This document shows positions 32,629 to 46,018 of a stretch of 64,000 nucleotides of DNA, in pieces. The notes under the pieces are model-generated. The model did no database searches and was not told where the DNA came from. It was given only the letters and a program-made list of their open reading frames with translations. Position numbers and translations under genes: made by a program. Every line of letters begins with the position of its first letter. The first letter of the stretch is position 1. The stretch spans positions 1 to 64,000 of IMG/VR virus record IMGVR_UViG_3300005613_000002. One strand, written 5' to 3'.

Positions 32629-33075
32629 TTATTTTGATTTATTTTCCAAATAAATCACACCATTCGAACTATCTATTAATGCTTGATGTTCAGATTCAAC
32701 ATAATTACAATAAATAAACATATTATCACCAAACTGTTCAATTTGAAGTTTAAGTGTAACTGTTAAATCGAATAATAATTGTGGATATGAATTAATTAAT
32801 GAAATTGGTGCAACAATTCTCATTTCACATTCATCATTATGCCACTTACATACATCAAATTCACCATTTTCTAAAGCACTTTGAGCATCTTCTTCATTAT
32901 CAAACCAATACCACCCATCTATAGGAAAATCATATGTATCTTTTAATTCTTTACTTAATTCATAATCTCGTGCTATAATAAAATTAGCACCATAAATTAA
33001 ATTAATTCCATCTTCTGTTTTATAAAATCCATCTGTCATAATATTCAATTTAAATGTTATCCAGCTATTGTCCAA
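32629..33075 (-). CDS. Hypothetical protein
   Basis: GFYK...L.YGANF...FPIDGWYWFD; in operon. Confidence 0.6.
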   Translation of the reverse strand: MDNSWITFKLNIMTDGFYKTEDGINLIYGANFIIARDYELSKELKDTYDFPIDGWYWFDNEEDAQSALENGEFDVCKWHNDECEMRIVAPISLINSYPQLLFDLTVTLKLQIEQFGDNMFIYCNYVESEHQALIDSSNGVIYLENKSK

Positions 33076-34151
33076 CCCTTATCTGTTGCAATTTGTCTTT
33101 CAGCAGCAGTTAATAATGCTGCCCCATAATTTCCAGTTATTGTAATTGTTTGTGATGTTACACCTGATGCTAACCCATTAAATATATCCACCAATGCTTC
33201 TTGACCTAATAAACAATTATTATAACTTATACTGATTGATGTCCCACTTAACACACCAGCAGATAATGAGAAATTATAATAAAACATATTTGTAAAACTA
33301 GTACCTCCTGATGTATTTAACATTGGTATTGTTTGTAATGAAGTACAATATTGAAACATCGAATAAAATGTTGTTGCCCCTGATGTATTTAAATATGGTA
33401 TGGTTCTTAATGTTTGGCAATATGTAAACATATTACCAAAATATTGAACATTTGATGTATCTAATAATGGTATTGTTTCTAATGAATTACAATACATAAA
33501 CATATATGTTAAATCAGTACCTTTTGATGTATCTAATGATACTAACTTTTGTAATTTATAACAATAATAAAACATATATTCAAAATCTGAAATATTATTA
33601 GTACCAATAAATTCGAATTGTTCTAATAGACCAGTTTTAGTATCATCATCAGATATTAAAATTTGAGTAAAACCAGTACCTGCCATTCTAATATCTAACC
33701 AACCATTACAATAATCAACAGTATCTTGTTTAACATTTAAATAACAATTTGTTAAAGTTTCACCAGATTGTGGTGTTACAACAACAATTGCCTGTCTATA
33801 TCCTTTTGAGCTTTCAGTAGTTACATCATAATCACCATAATTTAAATAGTCATCATATTGTACACCACTAGCAACATCAGTATCTGACACTAAGGAAGAT
33901 TTATTATAAACTTTTACATTATATGCACCACTAAAATCTAATGTTAAAAAAGTACCATTTTCATAAACAGCATGTAATCCAACAAATATTTCATTTCCTT
34001 CAACTATCGTATAACCAGTTGTAATATCTAACCAATCAGTTGGTCTAGTATATGAATTATCATATATGTCTTGCCAATATTGCTCAGTCCATTCTGGTGT
34101 TGTATCTCCACCACTTCCTATCATTGGTAATTTAAAAGTTCCTATTGCCAT
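33057..34151 (-). CDS. DUF285/BspA-type leucine-rich repeat protein
   Basis: Four to five repeats of (L/D)TS.G..F..MF.YC.SL.TIP.L. Confidence 0.8.
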   Translation of the reverse strand: MAIGTFKLPMIGSGGDTTPEWTEQYWQDIYDNSYTRPTDWLDITTGYTIVEGNEIFVGLHAVYENGTFLTLDFSGAYNVKVYNKSSLVSDTDVASGVQYDDYLNYGDYDVTTESSKGYRQAIVVVTPQSGETLTNCYLNVKQDTVDYCNGWLDIRMAGTGFTQILISDDDTKTGLLEQFEFIGTNNISDFEYMFYYCYKLQKLVSLDTSKGTDLTYMFMYCNSLETIPLLDTSNVQYFGNMFTYCQTLRTIPYLNTSGATTFYSMFQYCTSLQTIPMLNTSGGTSFTNMFYYNFSLSAGVLSGTSISISYNNCLLGQEALVDIFNGLASGVTSQTITITGNYGAALLTAAERQIATDKGWTIAG

Positions 34152-40036: not shown

Positions 40037-41131
40037 TTACATACTAAATTTATCTTGTTTCCTAGCTTTACGTCTTAATTCATTTACTTCTCTAAAAGCA
40101 TTTGGATTAAACGTTTCTTTTTTTACAATCGATACCAAATGATTAAATTCGTTTTCAGTAATAACCTGACCAACATAACCATCATTCTTTAACACATAAC
40201 TTTTTGCTCTTGAAGTACTACTATTCCCCTCAGAATCTAATGTAGCATCAAATGTAAATTCAAGAAGTTCTTGAACTTTTTCATGTACACTTAAAGTAAT
40301 ATTTTCTTTAGTTTTCTTTAATGCTTTTTCCATTAAATCAAGAAAATGTTCACGATTACTTTTTTTCAAGTTATTATATGTATCAGTAAATTCTTGTTTC
40401 GATGTTTTATCTTTCACTTCAGATATAATTGCAAGCGAACCATAACAATCACGAATCATCATATCCCATACTTGTTCGGCATAACTAAACGATGGGAATT
40501 TATCAATAGCAACAATTTCTTCATCAATTAATACTATAATACCAATCAAATTTTTTGGTCTTTCAAAATGAGCAATAAATTGTTCAAGTTTTTCATCATA
40601 CTTTTCGAAATATTTATTCAAATAATTACCAGTACTAGAAACAGTGTCTTTACCCAATTTTTCAATAGCTGGATAAATTCTTGAATAATCACCATTTTCA
40701 CCAATATTATCGAACAACATTTCACGCATACTAACTGGTATCATACGAAATTCTTGAGAATTTCTAAAATGACCTGTTTCAGAACCTTGAACACATCCAG
40801 CATCATGATAAGTAACAGTTTTATTCTTATCAATATAACCACCTTTAATCATTGCATGATTTTGCGCTTTTTGTTTTGTGATAACTGCCATTTGTGTTGG
40901 AACTATCACTTCCTTATTTTCTTTATTAGTCAAATCCATTTGACCATAAGAACTATTACTTGATACCAACGCAGTCAATGGATTAGCAAAACGAGTATCC
41001 AATGAATATTCAGCGTCTGTTGTTAAACAAACAATCTGCATGTTCATAATTGATTGAACAATTATATTTCCATCCACATCCTTAACTGGACGACAACCTT
41101 TTAATAGTTCTGTAAAATCTCTTGTATTCAT
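40037..41131 (-). CDS. ARPP-1 (DUF6569)-like protein
   Basis: Q-N-H...G-C-V-Q-G resembles the ARPP-1 QNR...SCVEQG pattern (from recall); 12-nt gap to the TROVE-like gene. Confidence 0.5.
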   Translation of the reverse strand: MNTRDFTELLKGCRPVKDVDGNIIVQSIMNMQIVCLTTDAEYSLDTRFANPLTALVSSNSSYGQMDLTNKENKEVIVPTQMAVITKQKAQNHAMIKGGYIDKNKTVTYHDAGCVQGSETGHFRNSQEFRMIPVSMREMLFDNIGENGDYSRIYPAIEKLGKDTVSSTGNYLNKYFEKYDEKLEQFIAHFERPKNLIGIIVLIDEEIVAIDKFPSFSYAEQVWDMMIRDCYGSLAIISEVKDKTSKQEFTDTYNNLKKSNREHFLDLMEKALKKTKENITLSVHEKVQELLEFTFDATLDSEGNSSTSRAKSYVLKNDGYVGQVITENEFNHLVSIVKKETFNPNAFREVNELRRKARKQDKFSM

Positions 41132-41143
41132 ATCGCTAAATTT

Positions 41144-42772
41144 TTATGCGTTTACACTTATTTTATTATTTCTCTTAACTGATGATGTTGAAATACTCAA
41201 CACTTGATTTTCCAACCAACGTTTTGTATCAATTTCAAGTAGTCTTGCTTGAATTTGTGGTTGTATTGCTACTGGATTATTAACTGCCATTGTAACAACA
41301 TCTGAACCTAATTTCCTAACATCAGCACCCATTTCAGCACTAGTTATTGGTGAAATTTGATATATTGGGATATTGCTTCCAGATTCATTTCTCCAAATAG
41401 AAATTACCTCATTAGTTAAACCATCATATGAATTTTCATATCCATCAGTTAAGATAAAAATTGCATCATATGGTTTTGTTGCATCTTCTTTCTTCAACAA
41501 CCAAATAAATGTGCTTGCCAAATCAGTAGTCTCACCCTCAGTTTCACAAAAATTAATATTCTTTGTTGACTTAGTTAATACCCTTGCAGTAAAATCTGCA
41601 ATTGCTCTTGGTGTATTTTTTGATTCTACCTTGTTCCCATTCATTGAATTACTTCTATCTACAATAACACCAATATTTTTATAATAGAAATCTTTAATTT
41701 TTTTCTTTTCAGCAAGATTATCAATAGCTATTTTTAATTCTTCTGTCCAACCATTTTCATAACCTGTTTTATATAATGCAAGAAAATCAGTAGCTTTTTC
41801 AACATTTACATGTTTTTCAACACCCAATTTTGCTGTTGATTTAGTTTGACGAACTTGTTGATTAATTGATGTCACTTCAACATTTTTTCTGATTAAAGCC
41901 TTTGTTGCTTCTCTCTGAATTTTTGTTGACCACATTGAATGATATTGTGGGTGTTTCGTGCTTGAAACCAAACCTATCAATATTTCTTCAGGAACTGTTT
42001 TAATTCCATTAATATCGGTTTTTGCTTTTTGATAATCACTTAATAATGGAAAATCAGCCACATTATAATTTAAATTATTATCCATTTTAAATAAAAACAT
42101 CAATAATTTAAATGCACGAAGTGAATCGCCATTAAAATATTTCAAAATTAAATTATTTGCAATAGACATTTCTTTAGCATCACTAAACAAACCATTATTA
42201 ACTGCTTGTTTACTAGCAATTGAAATTAAAATGCTTGTCTTTTTTTGACCATAGACATGTTTTAATATTTCAGCAATTTTATTACGATATTTCAATGAAT
42301 AAAATTCAATATTTGATTGACCCCAAATATATCCAAGTATAATTTTCCTTGTTCTTTCGTTGTTAACTTTTAATTTTTTCAAATCCATAAACAAACGAAG
42401 CACATATGGAATACCATTTTCACCAAGATTATTCAATGCAGTTAGAACTGCTTTATCACAAACCCCATTATCATACCAATCAATTGGATTAACAATATTA
42501 CATGCACCACCTTTTAACGTGTTTTTAAACTCATTTAACAACACTTCAGATATATAACGACCAGTTGCACCCTTTTGAGTTGCAATAATCAATGGTAGCT
42601 CCTTTGAGAGATTATATTGACTATTAATCTGTGCACGTATAGCATTCAATTGTTCATCTCTACTGTGATAGTAAGTGGCACTACTCTTAGCACCAGAAGC
42701 AATTGTTAAGCCGTCTATCAAAGACTGTTTGATAGAACTAAGCATTCTCTGTGTTAATACCAAATTTTCCAT
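41144..42772 (-). CDS. TROVE/Ro60-like protein (helical N-terminal region plus C-terminal vWA domain)
   Basis: vWA MIDAS: VIVDRSNSM, TDLA, ILTDG; about 380-aa helical N-terminal region; size and architecture fit Ro60-like proteins. Confidence 0.65.
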   Translation of the reverse strand: MENLVLTQRMLSSIKQSLIDGLTIASGAKSSATYYHSRDEQLNAIRAQINSQYNLSKELPLIIATQKGATGRYISEVLLNEFKNTLKGGACNIVNPIDWYDNGVCDKAVLTALNNLGENGIPYVLRLFMDLKKLKVNNERTRKIILGYIWGQSNIEFYSLKYRNKIAEILKHVYGQKKTSILISIASKQAVNNGLFSDAKEMSIANNLILKYFNGDSLRAFKLLMFLFKMDNNLNYNVADFPLLSDYQKAKTDINGIKTVPEEILIGLVSSTKHPQYHSMWSTKIQREATKALIRKNVEVTSINQQVRQTKSTAKLGVEKHVNVEKATDFLALYKTGYENGWTEELKIAIDNLAEKKKIKDFYYKNIGVIVDRSNSMNGNKVESKNTPRAIADFTARVLTKSTKNINFCETEGETTDLASTFIWLLKKEDATKPYDAIFILTDGYENSYDGLTNEVISIWRNESGSNIPIYQISPITSAEMGADVRKLGSDVVTMAVNNPVAIQPQIQARLLEIDTKRWLENQVLSISTSSVKRNNKISVNA

Positions 42773-42859
42773 AGTTACATTTTAAACTTTAATTATTAAT
42801 AAAAATAACATTTACGAACAGTATTATACGTATTCGATTAAATAATGTTACAAAAATTC

Positions 42860-42920
42860 AAAAAAAAAAATGAGCAAAAATTTCAACGTAATTAAACATC
42901 AAATTTCCCGCCCATTGCTC
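42860..42920 (-). terminator. Long hairpin plus U11 tract between the ncRNA array and the TROVE-like gene
   Basis: Minus strand GAGCAA...AAAUUUGAUG/CGUUGAAAUUU...UUGCUC then AUUUUUUUUUUU. Confidence 0.55.
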
Positions 42921-42956
42921 TTTGTTTAAAAAAAACATTACTTCCTTACAAATAAA

Positions 42957-43047
42957 GGAAAGAAGTGTGATTGTATTTTTTGTACGTTTGTGTCGCCACT
43001 ATCTGGGCGACAAATTTCAATTTACTGTAAACACAATAAGTTCTTCC
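42957..43047 (-). ncRNA. Y-RNA-like element D (conserved stem plus GC hairpin, no tRNA fold)
   Basis: GGAAGAAC.UAUUGUGUUUACAGUAA...; AUUGUGUUU pairs with AAAUACAAU; inner UGUCGCC/GGCGACA hairpin. Confidence 0.6.
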
Positions 43048-43176
43048 ATAAAACAAATTTTTTGAAAAAAATCAATATTTTACTATTGATAAAAACCATT
43101 TTTAACCTACACATCATTTTACTGATGATTCAAATGTTAGGTGGGGTGATGTTTTTATAAACATCCAAAAAACTTT

Positions 43177-43329
43177 GGGAATATTTTTAAAGTATTTGTT
43201 GCTTTTTGTGTGCAAGTTTTAACGACTTGTGACTTTACCGTTTGTCTATATCCCCAATTTTATTTTTTATTGGTGGGGATAGAAGGATTCGAACCTTCAA
43301 TAATTACTGTAAACACTTATAGTTTTCCC
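43177..43329 (-). ncRNA. Y-RNA-like element C: circularly permuted tRNA (T arm-acceptor 3'-CCA-spacer-acceptor 5'-D arm-anticodon arm) inside the conserved stem
   Basis: GAAGG-UUCGAAU-CCUUC-UAUCCCC-ACCA (43298-43271) precedes GGGGAUA-UA-GAC...GUC-A-CAAGU-CGUUAAA-ACUUG (43255-43213). Confidence 0.8.
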
Positions 43330-43467
43330 TTAATATCTTTAACCTATTGAACTGTGTGTTTATGTGAGGCACTACTTGGAATGTAATTTATCAGTTTTAC
43401 TAGCCTTTTCATGTTCATTCAATTTAGGAATCCGTTTCCATTTTGTTTGGATTCTTAGGTCAAATTG

Positions 43468-43602
43468 TGGGGAGAATCGGATTCGAACCGATAATCTATT
43501 GATTTCAACTCAATTGCTTTAACCTATTACTGTAAACACTAATAGTTCTCTTTTAAAGAGTAATGAGATAGTATTATTTGTTTTTGTTTTTGCTATCTCC
43601 CC
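43468..43602 (-). ncRNA. tRNA-like element B with the conserved stem inserted in the D-arm (anticodon-loop triplet UGA)
   Basis: 7-bp GGGGAGA/UCUCCCC acceptor, AUUGA/UCAAU anticodon stem, AUCGG-UUCGAAU-CCGAU T arm; about 62-nt insertion after C11. Confidence 0.75.
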
Positions 43603-43835
43603 ATTTATTAAATCCTGTAATTTTAATTAATACTTTATGTTTCTCTCTTTTCAGTAGCGTACATATCTCGTTAATCCTAAATTACAGAATTATTTTTTTA
43701 AATCTAAGCACCATGCCATTTCATAGGTATTAAAACCGCCAAAATTGGGGGTCTGCTTAAATTTATTTCATTATTTTAAAGAACTTTAAGCCAGTTACGT
43801 TTACATAAAGTAAAGAGGCTTTACTGACTATCATG

Positions 43836-43923
43836 TAGCGGGAGAGGGATTCGAACCCCCGTTAAACCTTATTCAGGACTCCGTGCTTATGAGACAGGTG
43901 AGATACCGCTTCTCCATCCCGCA
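43836..43923 (-). tRNA. tRNA with CAU anticodon (Met or Ile2) and a 20-nt variable arm; no encoded CCA
   Basis: UGCGGGA/UCCCGCU acceptor, GAG/CUC D stem, CUCAUAA loop, GGGGG-UUCGAAU-CCCUC T arm. Confidence 0.75.
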
Positions 43924-43937
43924 ATATATTTTTTATA

Positions 43938-44064
43938 AAAGGATAGTTTATTTGTTATATGTTGTTTTTACAAAGTTGGATTTGAACCAACGGCATACTG
44001 CTTATAAGGCAATCACTCTAACCGACTGAGTTATTTGTTACTGTAATAACAATTAGTTTCCTTT
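43938..44064 (-). ncRNA. Element A: tRNA-Ile(UAU)-like cloverleaf (43967-44040) whose acceptor stem is extended by the conserved stem
   Basis: ACUC/GAGU D stem, AUUGC-CUUAUAA-GCAGU, GUUGG-UUCAAAU-CCAAC; outer AAAGGA/UCCUUU and UUGUUAU/AUAACAA pairs. Confidence 0.8.
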
Positions 44065-44108
44065 AATATTTTCATCATTTTATATGAACGTTTTGTCCTA
44101 AGACGATA

Positions 44109-44138
44109 CAAATGTAAACATTATTTTTTAATATACAA
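44109..44138 (-). promoter_or_regulatory. Bacteroidota-type promoter TTG-N19-TACATTTG upstream of the ncRNA array
   Basis: Exact consensus and spacing about 45 nt before element A; a GTATTTATA motif also lies at 44177-44185. Confidence 0.65.
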
Positions 44139-44224
44139 CACTTTTTATAAAAAAATTTAAATTATACGTCTGGGATTATAAATACATAAATAATTTCAAA
44201 AAGTTTATAAATTTTAATAAATTT

Positions 44225-46018
44225 TTATTCTTTTTTTGTAACCACTTGATTCTTACGTTCTTCGATTAGTCTATCTCTAATACTAATCTGTTTTGAATAT
44301 ATATCATCAGGGTCAATAAAATCATCTTCGGAAACCTCAACAATTGGTTCAGTATTGTTTTTTAGTTCTACTTTCTCATTTTCAATATTAATTGACTCAA
44401 CATCTGACTTAACAGTTTCATCCTTAATAAGATTAGCACCTTCTTTAATTGGTTCATTTTCTTTTTTTATCTTATTATATTGCTCCAACATATCATTTAG
44501 AGGCTCATTTACTGGTTCATTTACAGTATCATTATTTGCTTTACCAATAATTTCACCTTCAGTAATTTGACTTGCAGCAACATGTACTTTACTCATATTA
44601 CTTTCTAATTTATCAATATCTGTAGAATCATGATGTTTTTTACCTTGATTTAATTTATCGTATTTATATCTATCATCTTCAATTCTAATTTCCATTGTAT
44701 CATTATTGAATATACAATTTTCAAAAGTCTGTCCATCAGCAGCAAACCTAGCTTTAATAATTCTAATATTAGCTAATTGTGATACTTTTTGGTCTGGAGT
44801 TTTTGCAACACTCATAAAAAAGTGAGCTTTTTGTATTCTTTTAATACTACCACCACTTTGATGTGCTTCAACATATTCAGCATCAAAACCTGAACGATTA
44901 GATTGTATTGCAGTCCATGCTGGAATATCGAAATCAGAAGATAATGTCTCAAAACCTTTAATAATGGCAAGTTCAGCTTCATTCCTGTCTGCGGTTTTTT
45001 TATGTGATTCAAGACAATCAAGATAATCTAACACCAACATATCGAATTTATAACCAAATTTTTTCTCATGCGATAACATCCAATTACGTACATCAGTAAT
45101 TGTTGTATTTTCTTGACTAAATTTCTTGATTATTAATTTACCTCTGTTTGTTTCTTTAGCAACACCATGTATGATTTCTTTAATTTTAGCATTTTCAATA
45201 TCATCATCCATTTTACTTAATGCGACTTTTGACCATATTGTATAATGCTTACGTTTTACCTGATCTTTAGTATCTTCAAATATGATTTGTGCAACATTAT
45301 ATTCACCAAGATATGCTGTATTTGCAATTTTCGTTAAAATTGTTGTTTTACCAACACCACTAGGTGTAAGTATTACACCAATTTCACCTTTACCTAATCC
45401 ACCACCAGTTAATGAATCTATAACTTCAATACCTGTTGGTATTGTTTTCCTAAATTCTTTTCTCAATGTTCTATCAATATTATCGAAAATTTCCTCACAA
45501 TCATCACCAACTTCACCAATTAATGATACTTTTTGAAATTTTTCTTCAATTGTAGTTACTGTATGTTTATTTTTTATTTCACCAGATTTGGTTTTATCGA
45601 TAATAAATTCACCTAATTTTCTATATTCTTGTTGTTTAATGAAATTATTGGTAGCTTTTTGTACTACATCACCATCATTTAATGTTTTTCTATTAATAAC
45701 ATTTTCATTCCATAATTCAACCTGTTTTAAAACACCAAACAATACTTCACTTTCAATTTCATTATTTGGTGCTTTATATCTATTTATTGCTTGGCGTATA
45801 CTCTTATTTTGATAATTTGGGACTTTTTCAAATTCTCTATAAAATTCAATAATTATAATAAAAAATCTTTTAATGTTTGGGTCATCGAAATATTCAATTG
45901 CTAATGATGGTAATACTCTTTCAGCGAATTCTGGTTCAACCAATAATTGCCAAATAAGTTTCAATTGAAATTCATGCCCTAAATATGAAGTAATTGTATT
46001 TTCTGATGTTTTACTCAT
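44225..46018 (-). CDS. Replicative DnaB-like helicase (T4 gp41-like)
   Basis: TG...D.LTGGG...GEI.VI..PSGVGKTT, VLDYLD, WTAIQSNR, K.RF. Confidence 0.92.
   Translation of the reverse strand: MSKTSENTITSYLGHEFQLKLIWQLLVEPEFAERVLPSLAIEYFDDPNIKRFFIIIIEFYREFEKVPNYQNKSIRQAINRYKAPNNEIESEVLFGVLKQVELWNENVINRKTLNDGDVVQKATNNFIKQQEYRKLGEFIIDKTKSGEIKNKHTVTTIEEKFQKVSLIGEVGDDCEEIFDNIDRTLRKEFRKTIPTGIEVIDSLTGGGLGKGEIGVILTPSGVGKTTILTKIANTAYLGEYNVAQIIFEDTKDQVKRKHYTIWSKVALSKMDDDIENAKIKEIIHGVAKETNRGKLIIKKFSQENTTITDVRNWMLSHEKKFGYKFDMLVLDYLDCLESHKKTADRNEAELAIIKGFETLSSDFDIPAWTAIQSNRSGFDAEYVEAHQSGGSIKRIQKAHFFMSVAKTPDQKVSQLANIRIIKARFAADGQTFENCIFNNDTMEIRIEDDRYKYDKLNQGKKHHDSTDIDKLESNMSKVHVAASQITEGEIIGKANNDTVNEPVNEPLNDMLEQYNKIKKENEPIKEGANLIKDETVKSDVESINIENEKVELKNNTEPIVEVSEDDFIDPDDIYSKQISIRDRLIEERKNQVVTKKE

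Follow-up and report, generated by a model that had tools for sequence, protein, structure and literature searches.

Ro60 is a major autoantigen conserved from bacteria to humans; in its canonical form a Y RNA lies on the outer surface of the protein and the ends of misfolded RNAs sit in its central hole. Here, a two-gene unit encoding a Ro60-like protein (P0001) and a protein with an ARPP-1 domain (P0002, hereafter ARPP) was analyzed in the first 64 kb, called the window, of the 321,624-bp IMG/VR virus record IMGVR_UViG_3300005613_000002, whose length and direct terminal repeats indicate that its source is a jumbo phage. An earlier note on this DNA had described the two genes as a discrete unit and proposed that the divergent TROVE-like protein encoded there has the ARPP protein as its obligatory partner, and the analysis supported this proposal. 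The link drawn there to nearby RNAs was also supported, as a conserved family of tRNA-like RNAs was found upstream of the pair in phages and bacteria.

Canonical Ro60 genes of bacteria and phages are accompanied by adjacent Y RNAs with tRNA-like domains (PMC4201824, PMC12135203), and jumbo phages occasionally carry TROVE proteins (PMC7824862). The closest described systems are Ro60/Rsr with its Y RNA (YrlA), RYPER (Rsr-Y RNA-PNPase; PNPase, polynucleotide phosphorylase), the rsr-yrlBA-rtcBA operon and Ro60-Yrl of Thermus phage phiLo, which, like the phage module, combine a ring of HEAT repeats with a von Willebrand factor A (vWA) domain bearing a MIDAS (metal ion-dependent adhesion site). On both sides, the adjacent RNAs combine a 5'/3' stem and an internal loop that is conserved with a tRNA-like domain (PMC4201824, PMC12135203), and since the Ro60/Rsr particle works with an effector enzyme, the same may, by analogy, be proposed for the phage module. 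They differ in that the module has an always-adjacent ARPP instead of PNPase or RtcB, and its sequence match to TROVE or vWA_Ro60 is undetectable. Compared with YrlA, the RNA of the module (scaffold RNA) keeps an anticodon arm with a varying triplet, and the module occurs in tRNA arrays. What the MIDAS does in canonical Ro60 is described as unclear (PMC12135203), whereas here the site is predicted by structural modeling to hold ARPP.

Such docking would have precedents. In the pairs of integrin I domains with a ligand Asp/Glu, and of the Rea1/Mdn1 MIDAS with the ubiquitin-like (UBL) domains of Ytm1/Rsa4, an acidic partner residue is found at DxSxS...T...D, as is predicted here, and MIDAS-ligand structures were among the vWA matches of the P0001 model. 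Unlike in the integrin and Rea1 pairs, the host of the MIDAS would here be an RNA-binding ring and the ligand an enzyme-like domain.

The ARPP domain was defined by Iyer, Burroughs, Anantharaman and Aravind in 2022 (PMC9503650) as having a distinct fold, in which one Cys and one Gln are absolutely conserved. It was predicted there to act on ribose or ADP-ribose moieties, perhaps via a covalent Cys adduct, a published prediction that is not cited in the earlier note. The contexts described in that work are ARG/rhodanese-phosphatase systems, HIRAN, WYL and aminosugar deacetylase, and the systems are predicted anti-viral ADP-ribose systems. ARPP of the ARG/rhodanese-phosphatase systems shares with that of the phage clade the domain, the conserved Cys and Gln and the tight gene pair, but in the phage clade the partner is a Ro60-like protein with RNA, and an extra invariant glutamate is present in an FVAEFE motif. 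In the literature searched for DUF6569, PF20208 or the ARPP domain, PMC9503650 alone was found, and it contains neither the word TROVE nor a Ro or vWA context.

tRNA array units and L-arrays (PMC4758250, PMC8421152) are, like the surroundings of the bacterial module, dense co-oriented runs (20-47 tRNAs) with embedded genes for proteins of RNA metabolism. The genes linked to L-arrays are HNH endonuclease, rtcB, dpsA and all4315, and no Ro-like or ARPP gene or scaffold RNA is named there. Among the papers on tRNA arrays listed by a full-text search, PMC6333295 alone contained 'trove', once and in a sense that was not read.

A Ro60-like ring protein and its ARPP partner

A profile search of 1.84 billion representatives returned 354 relatives of P0001, mostly 500-560 aa long, and 66 sequences with 20-45% identity were aligned. 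The AlphaFold2 model calculated from this diverse alignment had a predicted local distance difference test score (pLDDT) of 93.1 and a predicted template modeling score (pTM) of 0.91; it replaced a first model built from close relatives only (pLDDT 66.8, template modeling score (TM) ~0.28). The top 12 Foldseek matches of the new model were all Ro60, Rsr or TROVE proteins (E 2.6e-7 to 2e-4, TM ~0.5), including Ro60 of Thermus phage phiLo, and the next match followed at E 1e-2. VIA-align superposed model residues 16-514 on Ro60 residues 28-537 with a Z score of 18.0 and a root-mean-square deviation of 4.4 A over 411 aligned residues. Within the MIDAS motif (DxSxS...T...D), D372, D443 and G444 were invariant and S374 and S376 nearly invariant among the 66 sequences. 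The confident model, the top matches that were all Ro60, Rsr or TROVE and the MIDAS together indicate that P0001 is, by its modeled fold, a Ro60-like ring protein, which by sequence lies outside Pfam TROVE.

P0001 had no match in NCBIfam, PADLOC or PHROGs, the same scans gave nothing usable for P0002, and no family of PADLOC-DB 2.0 matched either protein at E <= 1. Searches of PDB sequences with P0001, P0002 and the 66-sequence profile identified no relative, and the profile missed Ro60. With PF05731, no canonical TROVE gene was detected in the whole genome of the phage at E <= 10; control genomes were detected. Some bacterial carriers of the pair encode a further Ro-like protein. In the tRNA array of Minicystis rosea, a canonical Ro60 gene (L033 ~800-2600, identical to L221:1378-3072; TROVE E 4.9e-43, vWA_Ro60 E 1.6e-64) is located ~3 kb upstream of the divergent pair on the same strand. 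In Stieleria magnilauensis, a separate 553-aa protein encoded ~200 kb from the pair (L222:796-2454, - strand) showed weak TROVE (E 7e-8) and vWA_Ro60 (E 9e-13) matches, indicating that such genomes hold a second, less divergent Ro-like gene. When the P0001 family was compared with a weak TROVE-like protein by hhalign, the vWA part only was aligned, at 2% probability.

P0002 matched Pfam ARPP-1 over residues 56-287 with 56.8 bits (gathering cut-off 27; E 2.9e-15). Alignment of 32 sequences of its clade, 21-78% identical to the phage protein, showed the residues A89, Q90, H92 and C113 to be invariant, and Q115 and Q118 to be nearly so; AQ(D/N)H and C-(I/V)-Q are conserved motifs. The residues 'Q-N-H' and 'G-C-V-Q', which had looked conserved in the single sequence, are thus truly so. 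R136, E190, R227 and Y230 are also invariant. The structural neighbors of P0002 in the ESM Atlas were other ARPP clusters only, with no look-alike outside ARPP.

Co-occurrence of the two genes was surveyed from both sides. One genome per species was searched with the P0001 family alignment, resulting in 62 loci, 61 of them cellular and one on the same 362,763-bp contig as phage locus L095; the hosts are Planctomycetota (many Pirellulaceae), Myxococcota, Bacteroidota and others. An ARPP homologue was located directly downstream on the same strand at 56 of the 62 loci (56/58 testable), as four of the six loci that lack it end at a contig edge and the other two carry the most distant relatives. 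In the reverse survey, a metagenome scan with the ARPP alignment, 80 loci were obtained, 70 with enough upstream sequence, and a Ro-like gene was directly upstream in 69 of these 70. The gene-neighborhood survey that had been suggested in the earlier note therefore showed the genes to co-occur. L205 is the sole ARPP locus with more than 1.2 kb upstream and yet no Ro-like match. The two most distant Ro-like relatives (L062 5026-6573 and L063 5665-7140) follow a CitMHS/TrkA_C transporter gene, and they may represent a sister clade with another role.

The two proteins also occur as natural fusions, in P0387 (884 aa, with ARPP-1 at residues 565-823, E 9e-30) and in L050, a single open reading frame (ORF) of 843 aa. 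L034, L035 and L045 may be fused as well, although the long ARPP ORFs there have extended starts and overlap with a separate Ro-like ORF in another frame. No third conserved protein gene was found at the pair loci, where only antisense shadow ORFs were seen, and linkage to ARG, R-P phosphatase, HIRAN, WYL or deacetylase was observed at none of the surveyed loci, the Ro-like gene being the sole conserved neighbor. In the clade of related phages, the two proteins show 72-86% identity and recur together on contigs of 300-370 kb. The same pair was detected by tblastn in an unrelated 462-kb phage (LR756500.1, an unannotated record); megablast of the locus against GenBank phage records gave no match.

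Complex prediction of the two proteins gave ipSAE scores of 0.64, 0.64 and 0.65, compared with 0.00 in all three controls, with a contact agreement of at least 87% and a partner pLDDT of 85. In calibration, 58 of 80 solved complexes and 2 of 110 mismatched pairs had reached this mark; the counts apply only roughly, because the alignments for the present prediction were made in this analysis. The predicted interface comprises residues 374-376, 414-416, 443 and 445-452 and following on the MIDAS face of the vWA domain and residues 24-29, 184-191 and 244-275 on the ARPP side; it thus includes the invariant Glu190 of the FVAEFE motif and leaves the Q/H/C residues outside. Glu190 is predicted to be placed at the MIDAS, in the classical mode by which a MIDAS holds its ligand. 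Together with the fold (Z 18), the two co-occurrence counts and the fusions, this modeled complex argues for ARPP as the obligatory partner.

Scaffold RNAs upstream of the gene pair

The non-coding stretch upstream of the pair (1.45 kb, 42773-44224) contains two tRNAs called by ARAGORN and Rfam and four copies of a 27-nt repeat. At bacterial loci, the 'tRNA' closest to the start of the Ro-like gene lacks a proper acceptor stem, and sequence conservation reaches well past it on both flanks. RNAalifold analysis of 27 copies yielded a consensus structure of ~130 nt. It comprises a 9-bp terminal stem, an internal loop with an invariant ACU, two G-C pairs and a helix of 5 bp (GUCAU/AUGAC), along with a U(U/A)ACAG junction and the D-, anticodon and T-arms. 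Compensatory changes were present in 20 of the 30 consensus pairs, paired cells amounted to 94.9% as compared with 32-42% when the partners were slid, and the covariation score of 0.436 (versus ~0.07) was reached by none of 500 shuffles. The UUACAG motif was rejected as a promoter because it forms part of the covarying RNA structure and is kept in genomes as different in composition as those of the A+T-rich phage and of the G+C-rich Planctomycetota and Myxococcota.

A covariance model, R1, was built solely from the bacterial copies, and the numbers of R1-positive loci were read by hand from the result tables. R1 found unit A of the window at full length (57.2 bits, E 6.8e-11) and the scaffold RNA of the unrelated 462-kb phage (E 2.9e-17). 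It matched ~40 of ~55 testable bacterial loci and 42 of the 53 phage loci searched, and the phage alignment, which is fitted to the model, keeps 93% of the pairs. In 10-Mb genomes, matches of 120-148 bits occurred at the locus of the pair only, with the next full-length match at no more than 59 bits. From phages to Planctomycetota, Myxococcota and Bacteroidota, the scaffold RNA is on the same strand as the pair and directly upstream of it. Rfam recognizes the tRNA core only, and the scaffold RNA of L008 gave a 19.2-bit partial match to YrlA, the gathering score of which is 69. Judged from these sequence comparisons, the scaffold RNA is a new structured RNA family that is absent from Rfam.

Further RNAs accompany the scaffold RNA at bacterial loci. 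At ~10 loci of Pirellulaceae, a tRNA-Cys(GCA) is positioned exactly 23 nt before it (e.g., L008 5526-5597), and a second, shorter scaffold unit can follow the first (e.g., L008 5737-5844). The genome of the phage itself has five occurrences of the scaffold 5' motif; the array upstream of the pair accounts for four, and the fifth is far from the pair, at 219836 (- strand).

Four units were distinguished in the window. The scaffold of unit A is formed by an outer stem (AAAGGA/UCCUUU), an AACUA internal loop, a helix (GUUAU/AUAAC) and a UACAG junction, and its body was called by ARAGORN as 'tRNA-Ile' with anticodon TAT (43967-44040). In most related phage loci unit A is directly followed by the initiator-like tRNA-Met(CAU), which has a length of 72-89 nt in the relatives. 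The 27-nt repeat of the phage, D1, is by its sequence the 5' strand of the scaffold. Units B to D were read by inspection and single-sequence folds. Unit B, with a partial R1 match at 43466-43535, appears to have a 7-bp acceptor stem (GGGGAGA/UCUCCCC), and its scaffold would form a capped hairpin that is inserted ahead of the D-arm. In unit C the order is probably permuted: the scaffold 5' strand, the T-arm and the 3' acceptor strand with ACCA would come first, and after a spacer of 13 nt the 5' acceptor strand and then the 3' strand of the scaffold. Its minimum free energy (MFE) fold has a long-range helix (GUGUUU/AAAUAC), an acceptor hairpin and the T-arm. The MFE fold of unit D shows an outer stem, the helix AUUGUGUUU/AAAUACAAU and a hairpin.

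In genes of permuted or split tRNAs and of two-piece transfer-messenger RNA (tmRNA), the T-arm and ACCA acceptor strand precede the 5' acceptor strand, as they appear to do in unit C. Unit C differs from two-piece tmRNA in that its permuted-tmRNA match is weak (43247-43298; 23.8 bits in Rfam, below the gathering score of 47), it has no tag reading frame and its scaffold is common to other units. This raises the explanation that the module is a dedicated maturation machine for scaffolded transcripts. The stem scaffold would signal processing, as it does in genes of split or permuted tRNAs, and cleavage or joining by ARPP at the internal loops would release, circularize or re-join the tRNA-like bodies. 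Such a machine would account for the same scaffold surrounding different bodies, one phage unit being permuted (ACCA, spacer, then 5' acceptor strand), the second and shorter unit at bacterial loci and the conserved internal loops between covarying helices. However, ARPP has no nuclease or ligase fold or motif and only ARPP clusters as structural neighbors, the Ro60 family is known as a binder of RNA and not as a cutter, and the permuted reading comes from single-sequence folds and inspection. We consider this explanation quite improbable.

tRNA arrays, variable anticodons and the proposed role

ARAGORN called 468 tRNAs in the 631 kb of the 61 cellular loci, all on the strand of the pair. At least 10 tRNAs were present at 18 loci and at least 20 at 10 loci, with a maximum of 47 in 13.5 kb (L033, Minicystis rosea); these dense, co-oriented tRNAs indicate that the bacterial module sits inside tRNA gene arrays. 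By the definition of an array unit (at least 20 tRNAs and at least 2 per kb, PMC4758250), 10 bacterial loci qualify and the window does not, having two tRNAs and three further scaffold units. No tRNA was within reach at 22 of the 62 Ro-like loci. The 45 other tRNAs of the phage are encoded at ~122,000-160,000 of its own genome on the + strand, several of them unusually long (84-96 nt). R1 matches of 40-55 bits labeled 'full-length' had made them candidates for scaffolded tRNAs as well, which was rejected, as the scaffold motif is absent there. The phage genome also encodes a tmRNA (132007-132367) and a tRNA with anticodon CTA, of the amber-suppressor type (159544-159617).

The body of unit A in the related phages keeps its backbone and carries 16 different anticodon triplets in 24 unique copies; TCA, TTA, ATC and ACA are among them, as are anticodons of the Leu and Ser type, although the tRNA has a short arm. 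All three columns of the anticodon rank with the most variable positions of the core in the phage alignment, and loop positions 33 and 37 are largely kept. Bacterial triplets vary as well (CTT, TTT, TAG, ATT, ATG, ACG, AAG, CTG, CGT, TGA and others). Within the group of close Pirellulaceae, CTT is the dominant triplet, and some positions of the D-loop and T-loop vary at least as much as the anticodon.

The variable triplet brings in a second explanation, a tRNA-centered weapon or shield in conflicts between phages, mobile elements and hosts. The RNA would either attract anticodon nucleases or other tRNA-targeting effectors, as a bait or decoy, or act as a guide for pairing with the anticodon of a target; the Ro-like ring would hold the RNA, and ARPP would inactivate or mark the captured target. 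The triplet differing among otherwise alignable copies, with the neighboring loop positions kept, is what such a role would predict in phages and, with its many triplets, in bacteria. The definition of ARPP in predicted anti-viral systems and the presence of the module in phages, huge phages and a patchy set of phyla with variable surroundings are in line with it too. On the other hand, the identity of 72-86% that the two proteins keep across a large clade of phages is unlike that of typically fast-evolving conflict genes, PADLOC gave no match, and the dominant CTT and ordinary variability in Pirellulaceae do not fit. On balance this explanation appears unlikely.

The reading that we favor, with slightly better than even confidence, is a Ro60-type ribonucleoprotein in which ARPP is the effector and the scaffold RNAs are analogues of Y RNAs, acting on tRNA-related RNA. 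In the proposed mechanism, the 542-aa protein would form a ring of the Ro60 type, though a highly divergent one, in which the vWA domain closes the HEAT repeats, and the 364-aa ARPP would bind this domain, with its invariant Glu190 completing the metal site of the MIDAS. ARPP would be the catalytic effector of the particle, be it a nuclease, a ligase or another enzyme, as its conserved Gln/His/Cys pocket is left free in the model. The structured RNAs upstream, each consisting of a scaffold of covarying 5'/3' stem, conserved internal loops (ACU...) and U(U/A)ACAG junction around a tRNA-like body, would take the role of Y RNAs for the Ro-like ring, as a bound cofactor, gate or substrate. The co-oriented tRNA arrays of the bacterial carriers and the more than 45 tRNAs of the phage suggest that the most likely job is on tRNA or tRNA-like RNA, in surveillance, repair or processing, with ARPP acting on a ribose or an RNA-end group. 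Which RNA is bound, and all of the chemistry, we infer.

Several results weigh against this proposal. The binding of the Ro-like protein to ARPP is a prediction only, given by a model score and not a measurement. The earlier note had called P0001 TROVE-like, which proved correct at the level of the fold, all top matches being Ro60 or Rsr, and incorrect at the level of Pfam, where hmmscan found no family at E <= 1, TROVE and vWA_Ro60 included; hhalign of the family against a canonical Ro60-type TROVE protein aligned the vWA domain only, at 39% probability. On the RNA side, YrlA (RF02553) and Y_RNA (RF00019) had no match in the window at E <= 10, the scaffold stem leaves from the acceptor end and not from the position of the anticodon arm as in YrlA (PMC4201824), and ~15 testable bacterial loci had no R1 match at E <= 1e-3. 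Lastly, the published contexts of ARPP (PMC9503650) are ADP-ribose-centered conflict systems and not RNA quality control.

In a further explanation, the substrate would not be RNA at all but a derivative of ADP-ribose or of a nucleotide, or else a protein held by the MIDAS, and the adjacency of the RNAs and tRNA arrays would reflect only shared mobility or an insertion hotspot. The published prediction for ARPP names sugar and ADP-ribose moieties, vWA MIDAS sites usually bind proteins, and the loci without a clear R1 match or without a tRNA within reach would then be no exception. Against this stand the Ro60 fold, which is an RNA-binding ring, the position of the scaffold RNA on the same strand directly upstream of the pair from phages to three bacterial phyla, as the sole strong R1 match in 10-Mb genomes, and the co-orientation of 468/468 tRNAs with the pair. 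A non-RNA substrate is therefore the least probable of the explanations considered, and very improbable in our view.

Layout of the locus and implications

The window has a G+C content of ~28%, and nearly all of its genes are on the - strand. It was translated in table 11 only and reads cleanly in it. The two genes are flanked by a replication block on one side, with a DnaB-like helicase (44225-46018), a 5'-3' exonuclease and a RecA-like ATPase, and by genes without a Pfam match on the other (features are listed in Table 1). Among the large Pfam-less ORFs downstream of the pair, a 364-aa protein with DUF285 repeats (E 1.8e-15) is encoded at 33057-34151 (- strand).

As the earlier note had described, the genes are 12 nt apart (41132-41143) and bounded by hairpins, with both ORFs, the gap and the terminators found in place. 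After the U11 hairpin and ahead of the gene pair, a sigma-70-like site (GTAACA-17-TATAAT, 42851-42823, - strand) scores 10/12. The bounding hairpins and this own promoter-like site make the two genes a discrete unit. On the - strand of the window, the motif ACGTATAAT occurs only at the two sites of the 42-nt element, which probably functions as a promoter; its being common to the RNA array and the gene pair suggests, from the sequence, that they are co-regulated.

Table 1. Coordinates in the window of the gene pair, the upstream RNA units and the associated signals.
Feature	Position	Strand	Evidence
Ro60-like protein gene (P0001, 542 aa): HEAT-repeat (TROVE-like) ring and C-terminal vWA with MIDAS	41144..42772	-	AlphaFold2, Foldseek, VIA-align
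ARPP-1 domain protein gene (P0002, 364 aa), predicted MIDAS-docked effector	40037..41131	-	Pfam PF20208; complex prediction
Intrinsic terminator after the pair	39987-39956	-	14-bp stem with 5 G-C pairs, then T-run
Promoter-like 42-nt element ahead of the gene pair	42823..42864	-	Reference copy of repeat D4; holds the sigma-70-like site
Hairpin and U11, probable terminator of the RNA array	42925-42858	-	MFE -21.3 kcal/mol, z -5.6; 0/200 shuffles as stable
Scaffold RNA unit D around a plain G+C-rich hairpin	42958..43047	-	D1 repeat copy; MFE z -3.0
Scaffold RNA unit C, putatively of permuted order	43177..43330	-	D1 repeat copy; MFE fold
Scaffold RNA unit B, tRNA-like	43468..43602	-	27-nt repeat D1 copy; partial tRNA match, 28.8 bits; MFE z -3.2
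tRNA-Met(CAU), initiator-like, 89 nt, with variable-region insertion	43835..43923	-	ARAGORN; Rfam, 44.3 bits
Scaffold RNA unit A around a tRNA-like body	43928..44074	-	R1 full-length match; core called tRNA by ARAGORN and Rfam
Promoter-like 42-nt element (TTTTTGAA...ACGTATAAT) ahead of the RNA array	44161..44202	-	D4 direct repeat, 71% identical to the copy at the pair

The biology of these large tRNA arrays is poorly understood, and the module is the first conserved protein-RNA module named in them, across Planctomycetota, Myxococcota, Bacteroidota and huge phages. Its scaffold RNAs make up a new family of structured RNAs that is of the Y-RNA kind and has a complete anticodon arm, and ARPP, known by computational prediction only, gains its first RNA-linked context. 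A fixed and sometimes fused partner that is predicted exactly on the MIDAS offers a simple mutational test of the role of this site, and as several carriers are culturable, with examples in Stieleria, Rhodopirellula and Minicystis, the hypotheses are directly testable. A further and bolder idea, which we hold to be unlikely though worth stating, is that the module represents a novel kind of Ro particle: its vWA MIDAS would dock ARPP, and the changeable anticodon of the RNA would set specificity, as a bait for tRNA-targeting enzymes or as a guide pairing with tRNAs or codons. If true, the module would be an RNA-programmed machine for tRNA surveillance or conflict, carried together with tRNA arrays by phages and bacteria.

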